From Podarcis bocagei (Eukaryota), in NCBI GenBank assembly GCA_964188305.1, contig OZ076886.1: DNA of 64,000 bases. One strand, 5' to 3'. This document shows positions 10,401-63,100 of this stretch, piece by piece; positions within the stretch are counted from its first letter, which is position 1; each line of letters starts with the position of its first letter. A program made the translations under genes and the position numbers. The notes under the pieces were generated by a model. That model was not told the DNA's origin. It did not search any database and saw only the letters and a list, made by a program, of their open reading frames with translations.

Positions 10401-10568
10401 CCTGATGGCAAGGAGAACAATAACACCTTGTGGACTTAGCTCTTAGAAAAGTTGGCCGTCTCTCACCTGCTATGAAATTGGGCTTAGCCTACTTCTGTCC
10501 TCCCTATCAACTTCAACCTCTCTAGGACAAAAGGCTGTCCTATTACTATGGCTGGCTTTAGAGTAGAT

Positions 10569-10705
10569 CAGGCATAGGCAAACTCGGCCCTCCAGATGTT
10601 TTGGGACTACAATTCCCATCATCCCTGACCACTGGGTCCTGTTAGCTAGGGATCATGGGAGTTGTAGTCCCAAAACATCTGGAGGGCTGAGTTTGCCTAT
10701 GTCTG
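10569..10705. mobile_element. Palindromic hAT-type MITE, copy 1
   Basis: TIR caggcataggcaaact / agtttgcctatgtctg; nearly whole-length hairpin. Confidence 0.9.
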
Positions 10706-11029
10706 CTTTAAAGCTCTGTGTCTGAATGCCCTTCTTTGTGCTGGAACTTTCCCTACAAAACCCACTCTTTGGTGCTCAGTTGAAACAAACAGTGATCCCC
10801 CGAAAACCTAAGTTGATGTTTGCTCTGATTGAGCTCTAAAGAGTGGATGTCCTCCAGGGCAAAACAAAACGAAACAAAAATATGCTTGGACTTGGAGTTT
10901 TTAAGTGTGAACCTGGGCCTGGAAAGAGCACCTCACACAGTCCCTTTGTCTGGCACAGAAAAGAAGGGTAAGGGCTTAGCCACACTTACCTTTCCTCTGG
11001 TCTTTCCAGAAATGGTCCATGTTTTAAAG

Positions 11030-11165
11030 CAGGCATAGGCAAACTCAGCCCTCCAGATGTTTTGGGACTACAACTCCCATCATCCCTGACCACTGGTCCT
11101 GTTAGCTAGGGATGATGGGAGTTGTAGTCCCAAAACATCTGGAGGGCCGAGTTTGCCTATGCCTG
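11030..11165. mobile_element. Palindromic hAT-type MITE, copy 2
   Basis: TIR caggcataggcaaact / agtttgcctatgcctg; near-identical to copy 1 with the same loop orientation. Confidence 0.9.
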
Positions 11166-11197
11166 GAGTAGATGCTGCTGCATCCCTTGAGTCTGCC

Positions 11198-11400
11198 CAT
11201 AAGAACAGCCTGCTGCATCATTTCAGTGGAGCCATGTAGTCCAGCATCCTGTTCTCACAGTGGCCAACCAGATGCCTGCGAGAAGCCTGCAGGCAGGTCC
11301 TGAGCCCCAGAGCACTCTGCCCACTTGCAGTTCCCAGCAACCAGAAGCAGAACATATACCCACCATGGCGTTCTGCAAGGGATGAATTTCTTCAACCATC
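11198..11400 (-). mobile_element. CR1 3'UTR fragment
   Basis: cataagaac...gtccagcatcctgttctcacagtggccaaccagatgcc is the reverse complement of the 63020-63100 type sequence. Confidence 0.7.
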
Positions 11401-16779: not shown

Positions 16780-16905
16780 TTCTATAGCAAGGGCGGCAGA
16801 ACTACAACTCCCATCAGCCCCAGCCAGCATGGCTAGCAATGGTGTTAGTTGTCTAACAGCCCAACAATATGTAGAGGACTGCTAAGCTCCCCACCCCTGC
16901 TCCCA

Positions 16906-18140: not shown

Positions 18141-19909
18141 CTGAGAGAAAAAGAGAGAGAGAGAAAGAGGGGACCATCCCTTACAAGTGGGGAAAAAAAG
18201 AGGACATGCCCTTTTGCACCAGGAACACTAACTGGCTGCACATGGCACCATGCTGCTTTGAGGCAGGAGCTATGTTCATGACTGCATATCAAGCATTAAA
18301 ACCACTTCTGAAATCATGGGGGGGGGTGTCTTATTAGTTAAGCAGCTATCACAGAGAGCAAGAGAGCATGTGTGAGTTTGTGACCTAATGTATATTCTGC
18401 CACCCTTCCTACAATTTGACCAATACTTGAAGGGTCACCTTGACCTAATACTTCAAACACCACAAGTGTTAGTTGTCTAATTCTTCGGAAAACTGTTTTA
18501 GTCAGCATTTTACAGCCTTTAAACAAACATAGGCATTTGGCACCCTGATCCTAAACCAATTTCCACAGAGCACAGCACCATCATATTCTACAAGCTCCTT
18601 CTCTGGCCTAGTTCTATTTATAAACAAGGGGCTTTTATTTTAAATATATTTCATATCTGGGGTGGGTTGAAGAGGATACAACTTCAGCCGTTACCCGCTT
18701 TTCCAAGTAATTTGCAGCCTCTGAAATGTTTTAACTAGCTGGCTACTAAGGTCCGATGCAACACAGCAAACTTAAGACTGGCTGAATGTTTTGAGCTTTC
18801 CAAAAAATACATGCAAGGTTTCAAGCTGAAGTCTCTCAAATATGAAGGAAGTAGCAGGGGAAGGGTGATTAAAAGTGCACTTAGCATAGTAATTAAAGCC
18901 CTGGTTATAGGAAAATTGAAGCTGCAATAATTGTAGCCACAGCAGACTACACTTGTGTTCTGGACAGGATGTGGTGGCATCTTAGTGACATGTGAGATTT
19001 TCATTGCGGTTGTAGGACAGATAAGAATCTGTGAAAAGAGCAGCCACCCCCTTCCACTCATCAGCTCTTGGCAGAAGAGATGCCAGCATTCAGTGGGTTC
19101 AGGGTGAAAAGATGCAAGTTGGGGCAGATGGGGCTCCGGAAGTTTAGGATGTTGAAACAAGTCTGCTCTGTCCTCTTCAGTGCTAAGAGGTGTAACTTTA
19201 TAGACCTGAAAAACCTTTCAATGCCCAAAGCTGGAATTATTAAGCCCTTAGCAGTGAGATTAAGTGAAATGTATGAATGTCAAAAGGGCTGCCTGAGAAG
19301 ACCAGAAATCCTGCTTCCTCCGCCGAAGGCAGCACTCACCTATGACAGAGCTAGAGAAAAAGGTAAGCAGTTCAGCCAGGCACCCGCTGGCACTTCATGA
19401 AATGTCAAGTATTCTAGCTACTGCCTTTCTCTATACTTAAATGCTGGGCAGAAGCAGAGGAAGACTCTCACAGCGCCACGAAAGGAGGAAGTGTTTTCGA
19501 GCTTTGTGAGAACTTCACTGGCAGGAGCTTTAGGTTAGATTTCTAATGCACTATAGAATGTCTTGAAAGGATGGTATTTTAAAAAATAAATTATCAACCA
19601 CACTGATTACTCCTTTCATTGCAAAACAGCCCTTGCATGTCCAGGTTAGGATTTGTGCAAGCATGTTTATGATTGGGGAAAGGGGGAAATACTATGGTTA
19701 CCGCATTAAGACTGGATACGCTTTCAGCTCTAATTCAAAACAAAACCAGTATATTTAAATGCACACACAGCTACTTTACTATCTATAAAAAGGCCTTCCA
19801 CATGTTTTTTGTTTTTGCAATTGTCACCGATGATTAAGCTGTATTGCAGTTGGCTGCCATAGACGAGGGTCCGGCCATCTCATCAACTGGCTTTTGGCTG
19901 GCAGTGGCA

Positions 19910-20015
19910 CTACCTGGAAATCATGGAGCTGGAGTGAGACTGGCCGGAAGAGGTTGTAGCAGCACTGAGCTGAGAAAATCCGCTGTGACTTGATTCAAGG
20001 CTGCTCATGGACCCT
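19910..20015 (-). CDS. SEC14L1: SEC14L1 last coding exon (GSMSSLESSHSGFSQLSAATTSSGQSHSSSMISR*)
   Basis: 106 nt, ttttgcag|A GGG ... AGG TAG; summed CDS is 2145 nt = 714 aa plus stop. Confidence 0.96.
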
Positions 20016-21544: not shown

Positions 21545-22247
21545 TCACAACTCTGGTTTGCGACTCATAGTGAAGAAGCAACAGTATAAATCTTCTCTAA
21601 AACTGTTTACTCCAACAACAATCCTGAAACAACCCCATGCAGGTAGTCTGTAGGCAACTTGATCAGTAGGTTTAGCCTTTATAGCTGGAATCAGTCAAGG
21701 CCCCACCTTCTCCAGGTGGACCATAGGAACCAGGTCTTCCAGGACTCACAGCTAGATAATCACCTCTCAGAATGTTGCATGTGGCCATTTTAGTGTTGTG
21801 GGAAACTGATGGGCTGCAAAGTGTTTCAGCCTTACAGTTGTGGTGATACTCAACACCCCCAACCCCCATTGGCTGGATCTTCTTCTAAAATGCTTGATTG
21901 ATATATCTGGGGATAGGAAGTGGCTGGCAATCCCAGGGCTTTCCTTTTGAAAACTGACCAGCACCATCCTAAAATCCCTTACCATTCCACAGCAAACAGT
22001 AAGGCCACTCATGACGCAAGGCAACTATTCATTGCAACTTAAGAATTCTCTTAGATCTGCCCAGTTACTGTTGGTTGTGATCAGATAGCCCCCCCCCCCC
22101 GAGTGCTGTAGTCCAGCGATGGAAAGCTCGTAGCCCTTGAGGCATTACTGACTACAGCTCCCATCATCACTTAGTTGCGCTAGCTGGGGTTGATGGTGCA
22201 CTGGGAGTCAAAACATCTGCAGGGGCATAGAATTGGAAGGGATGCAT

Positions 22248-26874: not shown

Positions 26875-27043
26875 TTACTAAATGTGTCTTCTTAAAACAA
26901 AACAAAAACCTCCCCACAGCTCCCCCAAAATCAGATTTGCTGAAGAGGTTTGTATCAACCACTAGAAAGCTGTCTTACTCTATCCCCCCTTCTCTTAGTT
27001 GTTGGGTGCATCACTGAACTGACGACATTCAAAGCTTCTAGGG

Positions 27044-27179
27044 CAGGCATGGCCAAACTTGGCCCTCCAGCTGTTTTGAGACTACAATTCCCATCATCCC
27101 TGACCACTGGTCCTGCTAGCTAGGGATGGTGAGAGTTGTGGTCCCCAAATAGCTGGAGGGCCAAGTTTGACCATGCCTG
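27044..27179. mobile_element. Palindromic hAT-type MITE, copy 3 (intronic)
   Basis: TIR caggcatggccaaact / agtttgaccatgcctg; 8-bp TSD ttctaggg / ttcaaggg. Confidence 0.9.
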
Positions 27180-27618
27180 TTCAAGGGAGTCCCCAATGTC
27201 ATAAAACTCCCTTTCATCTATACTCTGGGTGTGAGGGATGACAACCTGTCTTCACCCTGAATGAGGAGCAGGTGAAAATCTACTTCCAAGTGCCACATAA
27301 GGCCTGGAAAACCGGTTTCCATGTTTTCCTAAACGTTTGGCTGAAACTCATGTGAGATGTGTCCTCCTAATTCATATGTGGGCCATGCACCTCACTTTGA
27401 AATCATGGCTTTGGGCATGATGCACTGCAGTGGCCAAACATGGCGTGCCATTGCATCTGTGGGCACGGGGACAGGTTGGAGCCCTCATACACAGGAATTT
27501 CACAAGTATATCTCCTTAGCTAACATATGAATCAATATTAGAGTGATTAGCATGGAGTCTCTCAACACTTCACATTCCACTACTCATTATATTTCATTTA
27601 ACAGCTATTCTCTTTTAC

Positions 27619-50953: not shown

Positions 50954-51039
50954 CCCGCCCATCTGCCTGGGTTGCACCAGCTACTTTGGGACAGAGAGAT
51001 GGGGGGGGGGAATAATCCTCAAAAGAGACATAAGCCAGA

Positions 51040-52080
51040 GGAAGAGAGGGAAGTCGGGGTGACCGAGGAGAAGGGGGGGGAAGGAGCTGAGGAAGAGGGG
51101 CGACCCCGAGAGGGAAGGCGAGCCAGGTGGGGGGCGACTCGGGGGGGGGGGCTAGGCCGAGGAAAGCAGCTGAGAGTTGGCGAGGGAAGAAGGGCCGAGA
51201 GGAGAAGGCGGAGGAGGAGGAGGAAGAGGATGGGACATGGCCAGAGGTGAAGAAGAAGAGAGAAAAGGAGGCGCAGGGGGAGAGGATATTCGTGGACGTG
51301 GGGGGAGGGCAGCCGGGAGAGAGGAGCACGGAGGGTGGGAGTCAAAGGGAACGGGGGGGGGGGGGAGAAAAGGTGCTTAAAGGGGGAAGGGGAACGGGGG
51401 GCGGCTGGTGGGGGTGAAGGGGGCCTCCTCAGGGAGGGAGGGGGCGGGGTGGGGAGAGCAGCCCGAGGACGGCGCAGCTGTGTGGGGTAGCGGCGAGGGA
51501 AGCAGCCGAGCGGATGAAGAGGACCGGAGGGAGGGAGAAGCCGAGCGGGGACCCACCTTCTTCTTCTATCGCCAAGGCCGGCTGGTCTCTTGTCTCATGT
51601 CGGCTCCCTGCTCGGCTCCCTCCTTCGGGTGTTGCTGCCCCTGCCGGTTCCGGAGGGGGGAAGAGGAGGAGGAGGGAGGGGGGAACAGAGAGCGGAGACG
51701 GCCCGGCTCGTTGTTAGCCAGTGACGGAGCAGAGGAGGGGCCCGGCTGCCTTCCAACCCGTGCGCCTGCGCACTGTGAGGAGGCGAGGGGACGCTCCACC
51801 CTGCCCCTCCGTCTGCGCATGCTCCCAAGAGGCGGCCGCTTGCGCAGGCAGTGTGGAACGCTCAGAGCGAAGGCGCACAGCTGTTTTTGCGCAGCAAGTG
51901 GGGTCGTTTCTACCGTGTTGCTGTGGCAGCTGATTGCTATAGAGAACGCCGCTGAATGGGCGCAGTCGATCGAGCATGGCTTTCGTCCACCAGCAGAACA
52001 CACGGAACCTGGTGCAAAAATCGCACTTTTGTCTGAATACCGTGCATCCTCCGAACCACAACTGGGATTGTTTCGGTTAT
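51040..52080. promoter_or_regulatory. CpG-island promoter of SEC14L1
   Basis: Only extended CpG-dense, GC-rich non-repeat stretch in the window; NRF1-like TGCGCCTGCGCA 51761-51772, TGCGCATGC near 51814, GC box GGGGCGGGG 51441-51449. Confidence 0.85.
51557..51722 (-). other. SEC14L1: Probable non-coding first exon of SEC14L1 (TSS approximate)
   Basis: Inside the CpG island; donor AAG|gtgggt at 51555-56; Inr-like TCACT near 51722; NRF1-like site about 40 bp upstream. Confidence 0.65.
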
Positions 52081-54343
52081 AATATCCCCCCTTTTTTGTG
52101 CTGGCTCTGTACTCCGATCTGTTGGTATTGTTATTTCCCTCCCCCCCCCCGCTCCTTCTGTATATCCGATTCATTCATAACTGAAAATCAGTAAAACTCA
52201 AATTAAAGCAAAGGTACAGGTAAAGGTACCGCTGACCATTAGGTTCAGAGAGAACGCCACTACACTTTCTGGAGCCGGCTCACTGATAAGGCAGGCTGAA
52301 GTAGCTGCCGCCAATGTAAAAAAACCCCTCCCAACTGGTGGGGGCAGGGGGCAGCACTTAAAGAACATAAAACATCGTAATTATGTGTGACACAACATCA
52401 CACACAAAAAAACTCTTGTGTTCATTTGTACTGCATATACAACATACCAATCTGTTACTTTTAATTCATTTTAATGTGGCACAGTACTGTACAATAATAT
52501 GCCGCGCATAGTGTTATGGGTGGGGGACTGAGCTGGATGATCTCTTTGGGTGCCTTTCAATTTGGGGGTTCTGTTAGCGTTAAACAGGTTGGACAAGTTT
52601 CTCTTGGCAGGTGTTATTTGTTACAGAAACTGAAGACGGGTTGCTCCTAATTACTCTATCAGTGGCCAGCAAAGATTTCAATGATCTGCCTCACCCCTGC
52701 CGCACGTGTGTGTGTAAGTAATAGACCTGGAAAACTGAGTGGATGCAGTGAATTTTGGGTGCCTACACTCGACCTGCATATTTTCAAATAAACACCAATA
52801 TTACAAAAGACCAGTAAGCCTCCTTTGACCTTATTCCAAAGGAAATAAAATCTAGGTGCTAAACCCATGAAACTCCTCGCCACTTGGGGAATTGTGGTAA
52901 ACAATATTATAATTCCATAATAAATTAGCGCAAGCTGGATTTAGTTTGTTTTTAATGCCAGGATTCAGCCCTAGAGTATGTTAGTTTTAAATAAATTAAA
53001 AGCACCTCTGAGAACAGATCATCTTTACCTTACCATTGAAAATCTGAGCTGATGGAAGTGAATTTCCATGTAAACTTCAGCACCTGTACCTGCAGTGTTT
53101 TTGCTTCAGTCTGCTCCAGTCCAGTGCTCTTCATCCCACAGCCAAAACATCTGAGCCTGCCGGTTTTTAGTGCGAGCAAACACTATTCTTATAAAACTGC
53201 AAGCTTCAGAATCTCATTGCATCATCCTTGGAACAGCAGAGAGTCTGCTGTTTTCAGAAAGACTTGTGGGAGTTAATCCTGCCCAAAACATAGCTCTTCA
53301 GGAGGCTGGTTTCTTTCTAGTGTCACAGGGCAGGAAGAGTTTTGCTTAACACCCTATAGCAGGCCAATTTGCATGGGCATGTCGATGTAATGCTACCCAA
53401 CTATTCACTGGGTCGGATACGTGGGAAGGAATGTCTCAGAGGCACGTTCTGCAGGAAGCATTCTTATATTTGGATATTTTACTTCTGTGCACTTGACTGG
53501 GGATTCTGGGACATGTTCTGGTGTTTGCAGTCTAAGTCTGGTGAACTTAGCTGTCAACTCATGAGAGTGAACCCTAGAACACTCCCAATGCACCAACTGG
53601 TTCTGCGTTTTGGAAGAGAAGCTTGAACCTGGTGAACAAGCTCTCTTTTCAAGTTGCCCACCATGTTACTGAGCTTCTAATTAAGCAACTTCTGTTAGGC
53701 TTCTGCTCAAGTCCAGAGTTCCTAGGAATGCAGCTTGAAAGCTCAATTCCGTATTTTAAGAATCGGTCTCTGTGCGTTACTCAAGAAAACAACTGTAAAC
53801 AGTTCTCATGCTTTTATGGGCGGAGAGGCGAAATCAGTATTTATATTATTGTTGGGTCATTTTTTGTTAGCCTCAAAGAAGAAGCGAGTTTTGTTTTGTT
53901 TTAATTAAATATTAGCCAATGTGTTTGTCTGTAACCAGAAAAGGGTGAATGTAAACAGTGCAGACTTTGAAATCAAGCCATAATAATATTTTTCCAGACA
54001 CAAACTTTTACTGTTTATTAATGGCCGTTGAGACAGAATCTGGCATGAGTTATTTAGGTTGTGACTCTCACATGGTTCCTTCTCACACTGCCAGAATTGG
54101 GGATTTGGTTTGTTGTTCTGTGCAGGAATTTCCTTAGTTATTTTTCCTTTCCCCCATCAGAGGTTCTCAAGCTACTGTTAACAAATTCTTCCTCCAGGGT
54201 AATGAATATTTGACTTGTTTTAATATATACATATGCTCCAGGATTATTCTTAAGAAAAGTGATTTACTACATTGTAGTCTATTAATTTATCAAAAAAACA
54301 AAACAAAAACCCAATTCCTGTGCCTTTAATAGCAGCTTAAAAC

Positions 54344-62709: not shown

Positions 62710-63100
62710 AACGTGGATACAGCAGCACTAGAACACATGGACGTTCAGTGAAGCTGAATGCTGGAAGGTCAAGGGTGGGAAAAAGTACTTCTGAGCACAG
62801 CACACACTTAAAACTGTGGGATTCATTTCCACAAGCTGTAGTGATGGCCACCAACCTGGATGGCTTTAAAAAGAGTTTTTGGCAAATTCCTGGAGGATAA
62901 GGCTATCAAAGGCTACCAGTTATGATGGCTATGTTGCTCCTTCACTGCTGGAGGCAGTAGGCCTCTGAATAACAGTGACTGGGACTCACAAGAGCTCTTG
63001 TGCTCTCTTGAGAGTTTCCCATGAGCATCCGGTTGGCCACTGTGAGAAATGGATGCTGGACTAAATGGGCTACTGCCCTGACCCAGCAGGCTTCTTCATA
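62710..63100 (+). mobile_element. Older CR1 LINE 3' end with 3'UTR
   Basis: Degenerate KLW.S.PQ.VVMATNLDGFK coding followed by ggttggccactgtgagaa...gatgctggact. Confidence 0.8.

Follow-up and report, generated by a model that had tools for sequence, protein, structure and literature searches.

Two copies of a palindromic hAT-like MITE in the stretch of wall lizard DNA analysed here (64 kb, referred to below as the window) lie in direct orientation on either side of a 308-bp piece of non-coding DNA, and the whole is enclosed by a single exact duplication, 8 bp long, of the target site (TSD), with no TSD belonging to either MITE. The anatomy supports the conclusion that one event, not two insertions, brought both MITEs and the DNA between them to this site. 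In our reading, the unit arose through hAT transposition of an aberrant kind or through repair guided by a MITE, and comparable products are known in maize. Among the possible routes, we tentatively favour alternative transposition, at rather less than even confidence; by analogy with maize, an inside-out copy of one donor MITE locus would here have been inserted in one event.

Table 1. Features of the two-MITE unit and of the reference copy of the same MITE family (positions are those of the window)
Feature	Position	Strand	Description
Left outer 8-mer GAGTAGAT	10561-10568		Left copy of the TSD of the whole unit; exact match (8/8) to 11166-11173
MITE 1	10569-10705	+	137-bp palindromic hAT-like MITE, CAGGCATAGG...CCTATGTCTG
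Inner 8-mer CTTTAAAG	10706-10713		Itself a palindrome; 7/8 match to 11022-11029; read as one copy of the putative donor-MITE TSD
Core cargo	10714-11021		308 bp, non-coding, unique in the window
Inner 8-mer TTTTAAAG	11022-11029		Second copy of the inner duplication, one mismatch
MITE 2	11030-11165	+	136 bp; arms complementary except at the CpG site
Right outer 8-mer GAGTAGAT	11166-11173		Right copy of the TSD of the whole unit
Copy 3 (reference)	27036-27187 including TSDs; MITE 27044-27179	+	TSDs TTCTAGGG / TTCAAGGG; lies in a SEC14L1 intron

The order of these parts can be written A-M-B-cargo-B-M-A, where A is the outer 8-mer, M the MITE and B the inner 8-mer, and on re-reading the sequence we found the coordinates and letters that an earlier, sequence-only reading had given for this pattern to be exact. 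The two copies of GAGTAGAT are separated by 597 bp and are the only occurrences of that 8-mer in the 64-kb window, both of them at the outer borders of the unit. Between MITE 1 and MITE 2 lie 324 bases, made up of the core cargo and the two inner 8-mers, and the MITEs themselves are full-length direct repeats with a spacing of 460/461 bp. That neither MITE has a matching TSD of its own, as had also been claimed, is borne out by the flanks, since the two that border each element agree with one another at only 3/8 positions when counted by eye. The unit therefore has the structure by which a macrotransposon or composite transposon is defined, namely elements in direct orientation that share one outer TSD of the length typical of the family and have none each, together with the outer half of what defines a Composite Insertion, that is, transposable element (TE) termini in the outermost position and an 8-bp TSD. 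Relative to the stop codon of SEC14L1, it is about 8.7 kb downstream. A 69-bp dispersed repeat (11207-11275), which has an inverted 83% copy at 63025-63092, begins 41 bp outside the right end of the unit, so that the unit adjoins, or sits inside, an older repeat.

The elements are non-coding and 136-137 bp long, with arms of 58-63 nt that are 90-98% complementary (90% in MITE 1 and 98% in MITE 2) and with the termini CAGGCATAGG / CCTATGCCTG; a CAG-type terminus is typical of hAT elements. An 8-bp TSD was found around copy 3 (7/8), around the two-MITE unit (8/8) and in the inner pair (7/8). On these tested features the MITEs fit the hAT superfamily. No open reading frame (ORF) of transposase size was detected in the 64-kb window. 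MITE 1 and MITE 2 are 95.6% identical and differ by five substitutions and, in the central loop, by an indel of 1 bp, while copy 3, an older copy, is 87.5% identical to MITE 2. Copy 3 had been put forward as an example of the normal TSD of the family; it does carry an ordinary 8-bp duplication, but an imperfect one, TTCTAGGG and TTCAAGGG agreeing at 7/8 positions. Degenerate short fragments of the family were also seen at 22150-22224 (71% over 83 bp) and 16801-16824 (92% over 24 bp), and a pattern describing the MITE core had 0 matches in metagenome and prokaryote genome contigs.

Since the argument depends on how readily such 8-mers agree by chance, we estimated this from three million sampled pairs of 8-mers from the 64-kb window. 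For unfiltered pairs, the probability of an 8/8 match was 5e-5 and that of at least 7/8 was 6e-4. With pairs restricted to 8-mers having a central TA, which is common to all target sites seen in the window, these values were 7e-4 and 7e-3, and under an nTnTAnAn filter they were 1e-2 and 7e-2, this last filter being deliberately too strict, as both GAGTAGAT and the target site of copy 3 break it. For random 8-mers, an outer 8/8 and an inner match of at least 7/8 have a joint chance of about 3e-8; a central-TA preference raises it to about 5e-6.

These figures support treating the outer 8-mers as one TSD: the outer match, which the sequence-only reading had singled out as the strong evidence, is 8/8, confined to the unit within the window and expected by chance at 5e-5. 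The same reading had allowed that the inner match could be coincidental. The probability of a coincidence is 0.7% with a central TA and 7% under nTnTAnAn, and the three target sequences of the MITE family seen here agree pairwise at only 3-4/8 positions (counted). For two unrelated target sites of this family, we would put the probability of a 7/8 inner match at roughly 1-2%, a rough estimate within the bounds of 0.7-7%. The inner 8-mers are thus most simply taken as the probable TSD of a second, single MITE insertion, a reading that the match supports. Substitutions between the MITEs amount to 3.7%, a level with which one later change in the 16 inner bases agrees, and, taken together, 5 substitutions in 136 bp are compatible with 0/8 changes in the outer and 1/8 changes in the inner 8-mer pair. 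In sum, the core of the earlier proposal, that there was one event and that it involved a second MITE with its own TSD, is backed by the internal statistics of the outer 8/8 and inner 7/8 matches.

The arms of the two MITEs carry a further, slighter trace of the same nesting. Each arm has a single CpG, whose G is arm position 18; this base is G in the outer arms but A in the inner ones, as the arm-variant swap had been described. It is the sole site with the swapped pattern, the changed base of MITE 1 lying in its right (inner) arm. Only MITE 1 has the four other differences, which are found at arm positions 4, 45 and 52 and, as the indel, in the loop, so that 5/6 of all differences fall in that element, a lopsided but not significantly lopsided distribution. 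Once two of the four CpGs had changed independently, a reciprocal pattern of the same type would arise in about 1 in 6 cases, which makes the swap, with its single CpG site, weak evidence that adds little. The inner 8-mer pair is the stronger internal clue of the two.

Taken together, the inner 8-mers and the inner arms most likely derive from a single donor MITE locus, now in inside-out form. We infer that there was one donor, of which two copies were used, that a join lies inside the cargo and that a transposase was involved. Elsewhere in the genome, the donor would have had the form ...cargoR-YTTTAAAG-MITE-YTTTAAAG-cargoL..., and two copies of the donor MITE would have been used together, most simply the sister-chromatid copies present just after replication. 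The hAT transposase would cut one copy at its left end and the other at its right end, and the cut ends would insert at the target GAGTAGAT, generating the usual 8-bp duplication. The attached flanks would be dragged along, the right flank behind copy 1 and the left flank ahead of copy 2, and following re-replication the two short flank pieces, 308 bp in total, would end at breaks and be joined by end joining. The predicted product is A-M-B-cargoL/cargoR-B-M-A (the slash marking the join), in which the cargo would consist of the two donor flanks, the right one first and the left one after it. Such a reaction would need no resident MITE at GAGTAGAT, and an equivalent outcome could be reached if the donor were first duplicated in tandem and then moved on the outer ends. 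The 95.6% identity of MITE 1 to MITE 2, as against 87.5% for copy 3 and MITE 2, fits two copies of one element, and the inner 7/8 match is what would be expected if both 8-mers came from one donor duplication. Against alternative transposition, position 18 would need two independent changes of the same type at inner-arm CpGs if the MITEs were identical at birth, with the chance of about 1 in 6 already given; the differences fall mostly, though not significantly so, in MITE 1; and a 0.6-kb product from a single element would be an extrapolation from what is known in maize. Stated in full, the proposal is that a single palindromic hAT MITE underwent alternative transposition naturally in a vertebrate, from two sister-chromatid copies and with aborted re-replication and end joining to follow, and that the unit is the relic of this; in that form it is doubtful.

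The three routes that had been proposed in the sequence-only reading could each give the same product, but its list was without a published fourth route, that of alternative transposition (PMC4270019). Two of the three start from a MITE resident at the site, with GAGTAGAT as its TSD, which broke or recombined, so that an ectopic MITE with the TSD YTTTAAAG supplied the inner parts. In one variant, a break, for instance at the centre of the palindrome, would be followed by invasion of one ectopic MITE by both ends, which would copy into its flanks and then be joined; in the other, a circle of about 461 bp containing a MITE and its flanks would recombine into the resident copy. Either way, the result would be two chimeric MITEs with resident outer parts and donor inner parts. 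This predicts the same pattern of outer and inner 8-mers and directly explains the outer G and inner A of position 18, and a palindromic MITE would have homology to thousands of templates. Set against this, repair of a break would require over-long synthesis from both ends on one ectopic template as well as end joining, the integration of small circles by recombination is rare in vertebrates, and the arm evidence is that of a single CpG site. We consider an origin at a resident MITE a possibility, albeit an unlikely one, and placing alternative transposition above break repair or recombination at such a MITE is a judgement on our part, not a result.

The remaining route of the three, transposition of the unit as a macrotransposon, would be the simplest reaction and is one known for hAT elements in maize. 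Two unrelated MITEs 324 bp apart elsewhere would have moved, as an M-cargo-M block, on their outermost ends to GAGTAGAT, or ectopic gap repair would have copied a two-MITE template to yield the same product. The exact outer 8-bp duplication and the direct orientation fit, and with palindromic MITEs any outer pair of ends would be equivalent. We nevertheless think it improbable, because two independent targets would in that case have supplied the inner flanks. Given a central-TA preference, the probability that such targets agree at 7/8 is about 0.7%, and it reaches 7% only under the nTnTAnAn pattern that the other two target sites of the family break. Less probable still is that nothing of this kind took place, and that two independent insertions with decayed TSDs acquired a chance outer match or that the assembly is in error at a repeated element. 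Two independent insertions are not credible in view of the low joint chance computed above under either model, and because the MITEs, at 95.6% identity, are young and similar enough for TSDs of their own to be readable, yet each shows 3/8. Nor could a simple mis-join induced by the repeat set two cargo ends 308 bp apart.

Several other rearrangements were considered and rejected. An inversion between the two MITEs has the wrong flank pattern: as noted in the sequence-only reading, it predicts A..rc(B)..rc(A)..B, which does not fit, and the reverse complement of GAGTAGAT, ATCTACTC, is absent from the locus. The ends of the cargo are not inverted repeats, which argues against the cargo being a TIR element between two abutting MITEs. 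A fold-back or mirror duplication is at odds with the asymmetric MITE centres and with outer 8-mers that are direct, not inverted, and a tandem duplication at the insertion site cannot create the cargo.

The closest parallels come from maize, where Su et al. 2020 reportedly described Composite Insertions formed by alternative Ac/Ds transposition. In the Composite Insertions of maize Ac and fractured Ac (fAc), TE termini lie on the outside with an 8-bp TSD, and each TE is followed inward by its own donor flank (PMC4270019; PMC9910405). The two flanks are joined to each other, at a microhomology of 4 bp in one case (PMC4270019), and it has been demonstrated experimentally that these insertions arise by alternative transposition, re-replication and end joining (PMC4270019, Zhang et al. 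2014). Like them, the lizard unit involves a hAT-superfamily element, with termini at both outer borders and one 8-bp TSD. In maize, the donor flanks that lie inward of each element are fused; in the lizard unit, the inner 8-mers behave as a donor TSD (7/8), and the two parts of the cargo would be the donor flanks. The maize reactions involve a pair of distinct elements, Ac and fractured Ac, whose reversed ends lie 331-822 bp from each other, in contrast to what appear to be copies of one 137-bp palindromic MITE in the lizard. The maize products, which were observed as they formed, range in length from 4.5 kb to over 36 kb, whereas the lizard product is 0.6 kb in size and is an old, fixed vertebrate relic.

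Ac/Ds macrotransposons are likewise said to have been described in maize by Huang and Dooner 2008, and Wang et al. 2022 are also said to have dealt with Ac/Ds macrotransposons. The lizard unit resembles these, and bacterial IS-flanked composite transposons, in having one TSD and a pair of elements in direct orientation that would have moved the DNA between them on the outer ends, but differs in its inner flanks, which in those systems are unrelated and here match at 7/8 as one duplication. DNA transposons are also able to capture host DNA through gap repair, as in Pack-MULE-type capture and in the filler DNA found at excision sites. The likeness would lie in repair that uses an ectopic copy of the element as its template and leaves host DNA between transposon ends. 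In classical capture, however, the filler lies between the two ends of one element, while in the lizard there is a complete element on each side, with a second 8-bp duplication at the borders of the filler.

Most studies of alternative transposition have followed it while it takes place in maize. A fixed vertebrate product resolved to the base, if that is what the lizard unit is, would imply that host DNA in animal genomes is shuffled by the same aberrant hAT reactions or by break repair guided by MITEs. Should the two-copy transposition reading be true, the very abundant MITEs of lizards would as a matter of routine place copies of short flanking segments at new sites, by a reaction so far shown only for engineered or special maize Ac/fAc pairs. 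The A-M-B...B-M-A pattern would then be a signature that can be searched for genome-wide, the nested pair of duplications serving as a simple rule for finding further cases and for measuring their frequency. The value of a single 308-bp non-coding segment is mechanistic, not functional.

The cargo itself has only short ORFs, and no Rfam families were found in it. Within the 64-kb window there is neither a second copy of the cargo or of the unit nor a paralogue spanning the insertion site, and we saw in the window no sign of cargo function and no sign that the unit had moved again or that such MITEs regularly serve as vehicles of host DNA, as the sequence-only reading had proposed. Searches among raw-contig gene calls gave no match, whether by 20 exact look-ups of ORFs from around the locus and from the exons, by a tolerant search with the right-flank ORF or by a mixed profile of four ORFs that was able, when checked locally, to detect an empty-site ORF. 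Inside the cargo, positions 10762-10846 form an 85-bp imperfect palindrome, its 30-nt arms 77% complementary and separated by a 25-nt spacer, which may be a decayed small foldback element or a coincidence.

The MITE arms contain the 13-mer ACTACAATTCCCA (10605-10617); the three remaining arms and copy 3 have versions of it that differ at one base. The 13-mer is letter for letter the THAP11-binding site that forms the core of the ZNF143 SBS2 motif (PMC3627581), and the four bases that follow it also nearly fit SBS2. An abundant MITE could act as a spreader of THAP11/SBS2-like sites. Both MITE hairpins (10589-10685 and 11055-11140) match the Rfam family mir-5408 on both strands, at up to 63.9 bits and below its gathering score of 90, and mir-3160, again on both strands, at 60 bits and below its gathering score of 80. 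It may be that the annotated mir-5408 and mir-3160 precursors are themselves hairpins of MITEs from a related family.

The neighbouring gene is an orthologue of SEC14L1, on the minus strand, with coding exons running from 48017 down to 19913. Fifteen (15) coding exon pieces align to fish SEC14L1, covering its PRELI, CRAL-TRIO and GOLD parts, and only fish SEC14L1 was among the matches listed in protein searches with SEC14L1. The stop codon TAG at 19910-19912 overlaps a GT donor, and a strong acceptor near 18143 would yield an alternative SEC14L1 ending, RWRFC. About 3 kb upstream of SEC14L1 coding exon 1 is a GC-rich stretch (51000-52200; 66% GC, GC skew +0.37), probably the CpG-island promoter and a 5' UTR exon of the gene, which is flanked near 50.9 kb by a long simple repeat of the AAT/ATT type.
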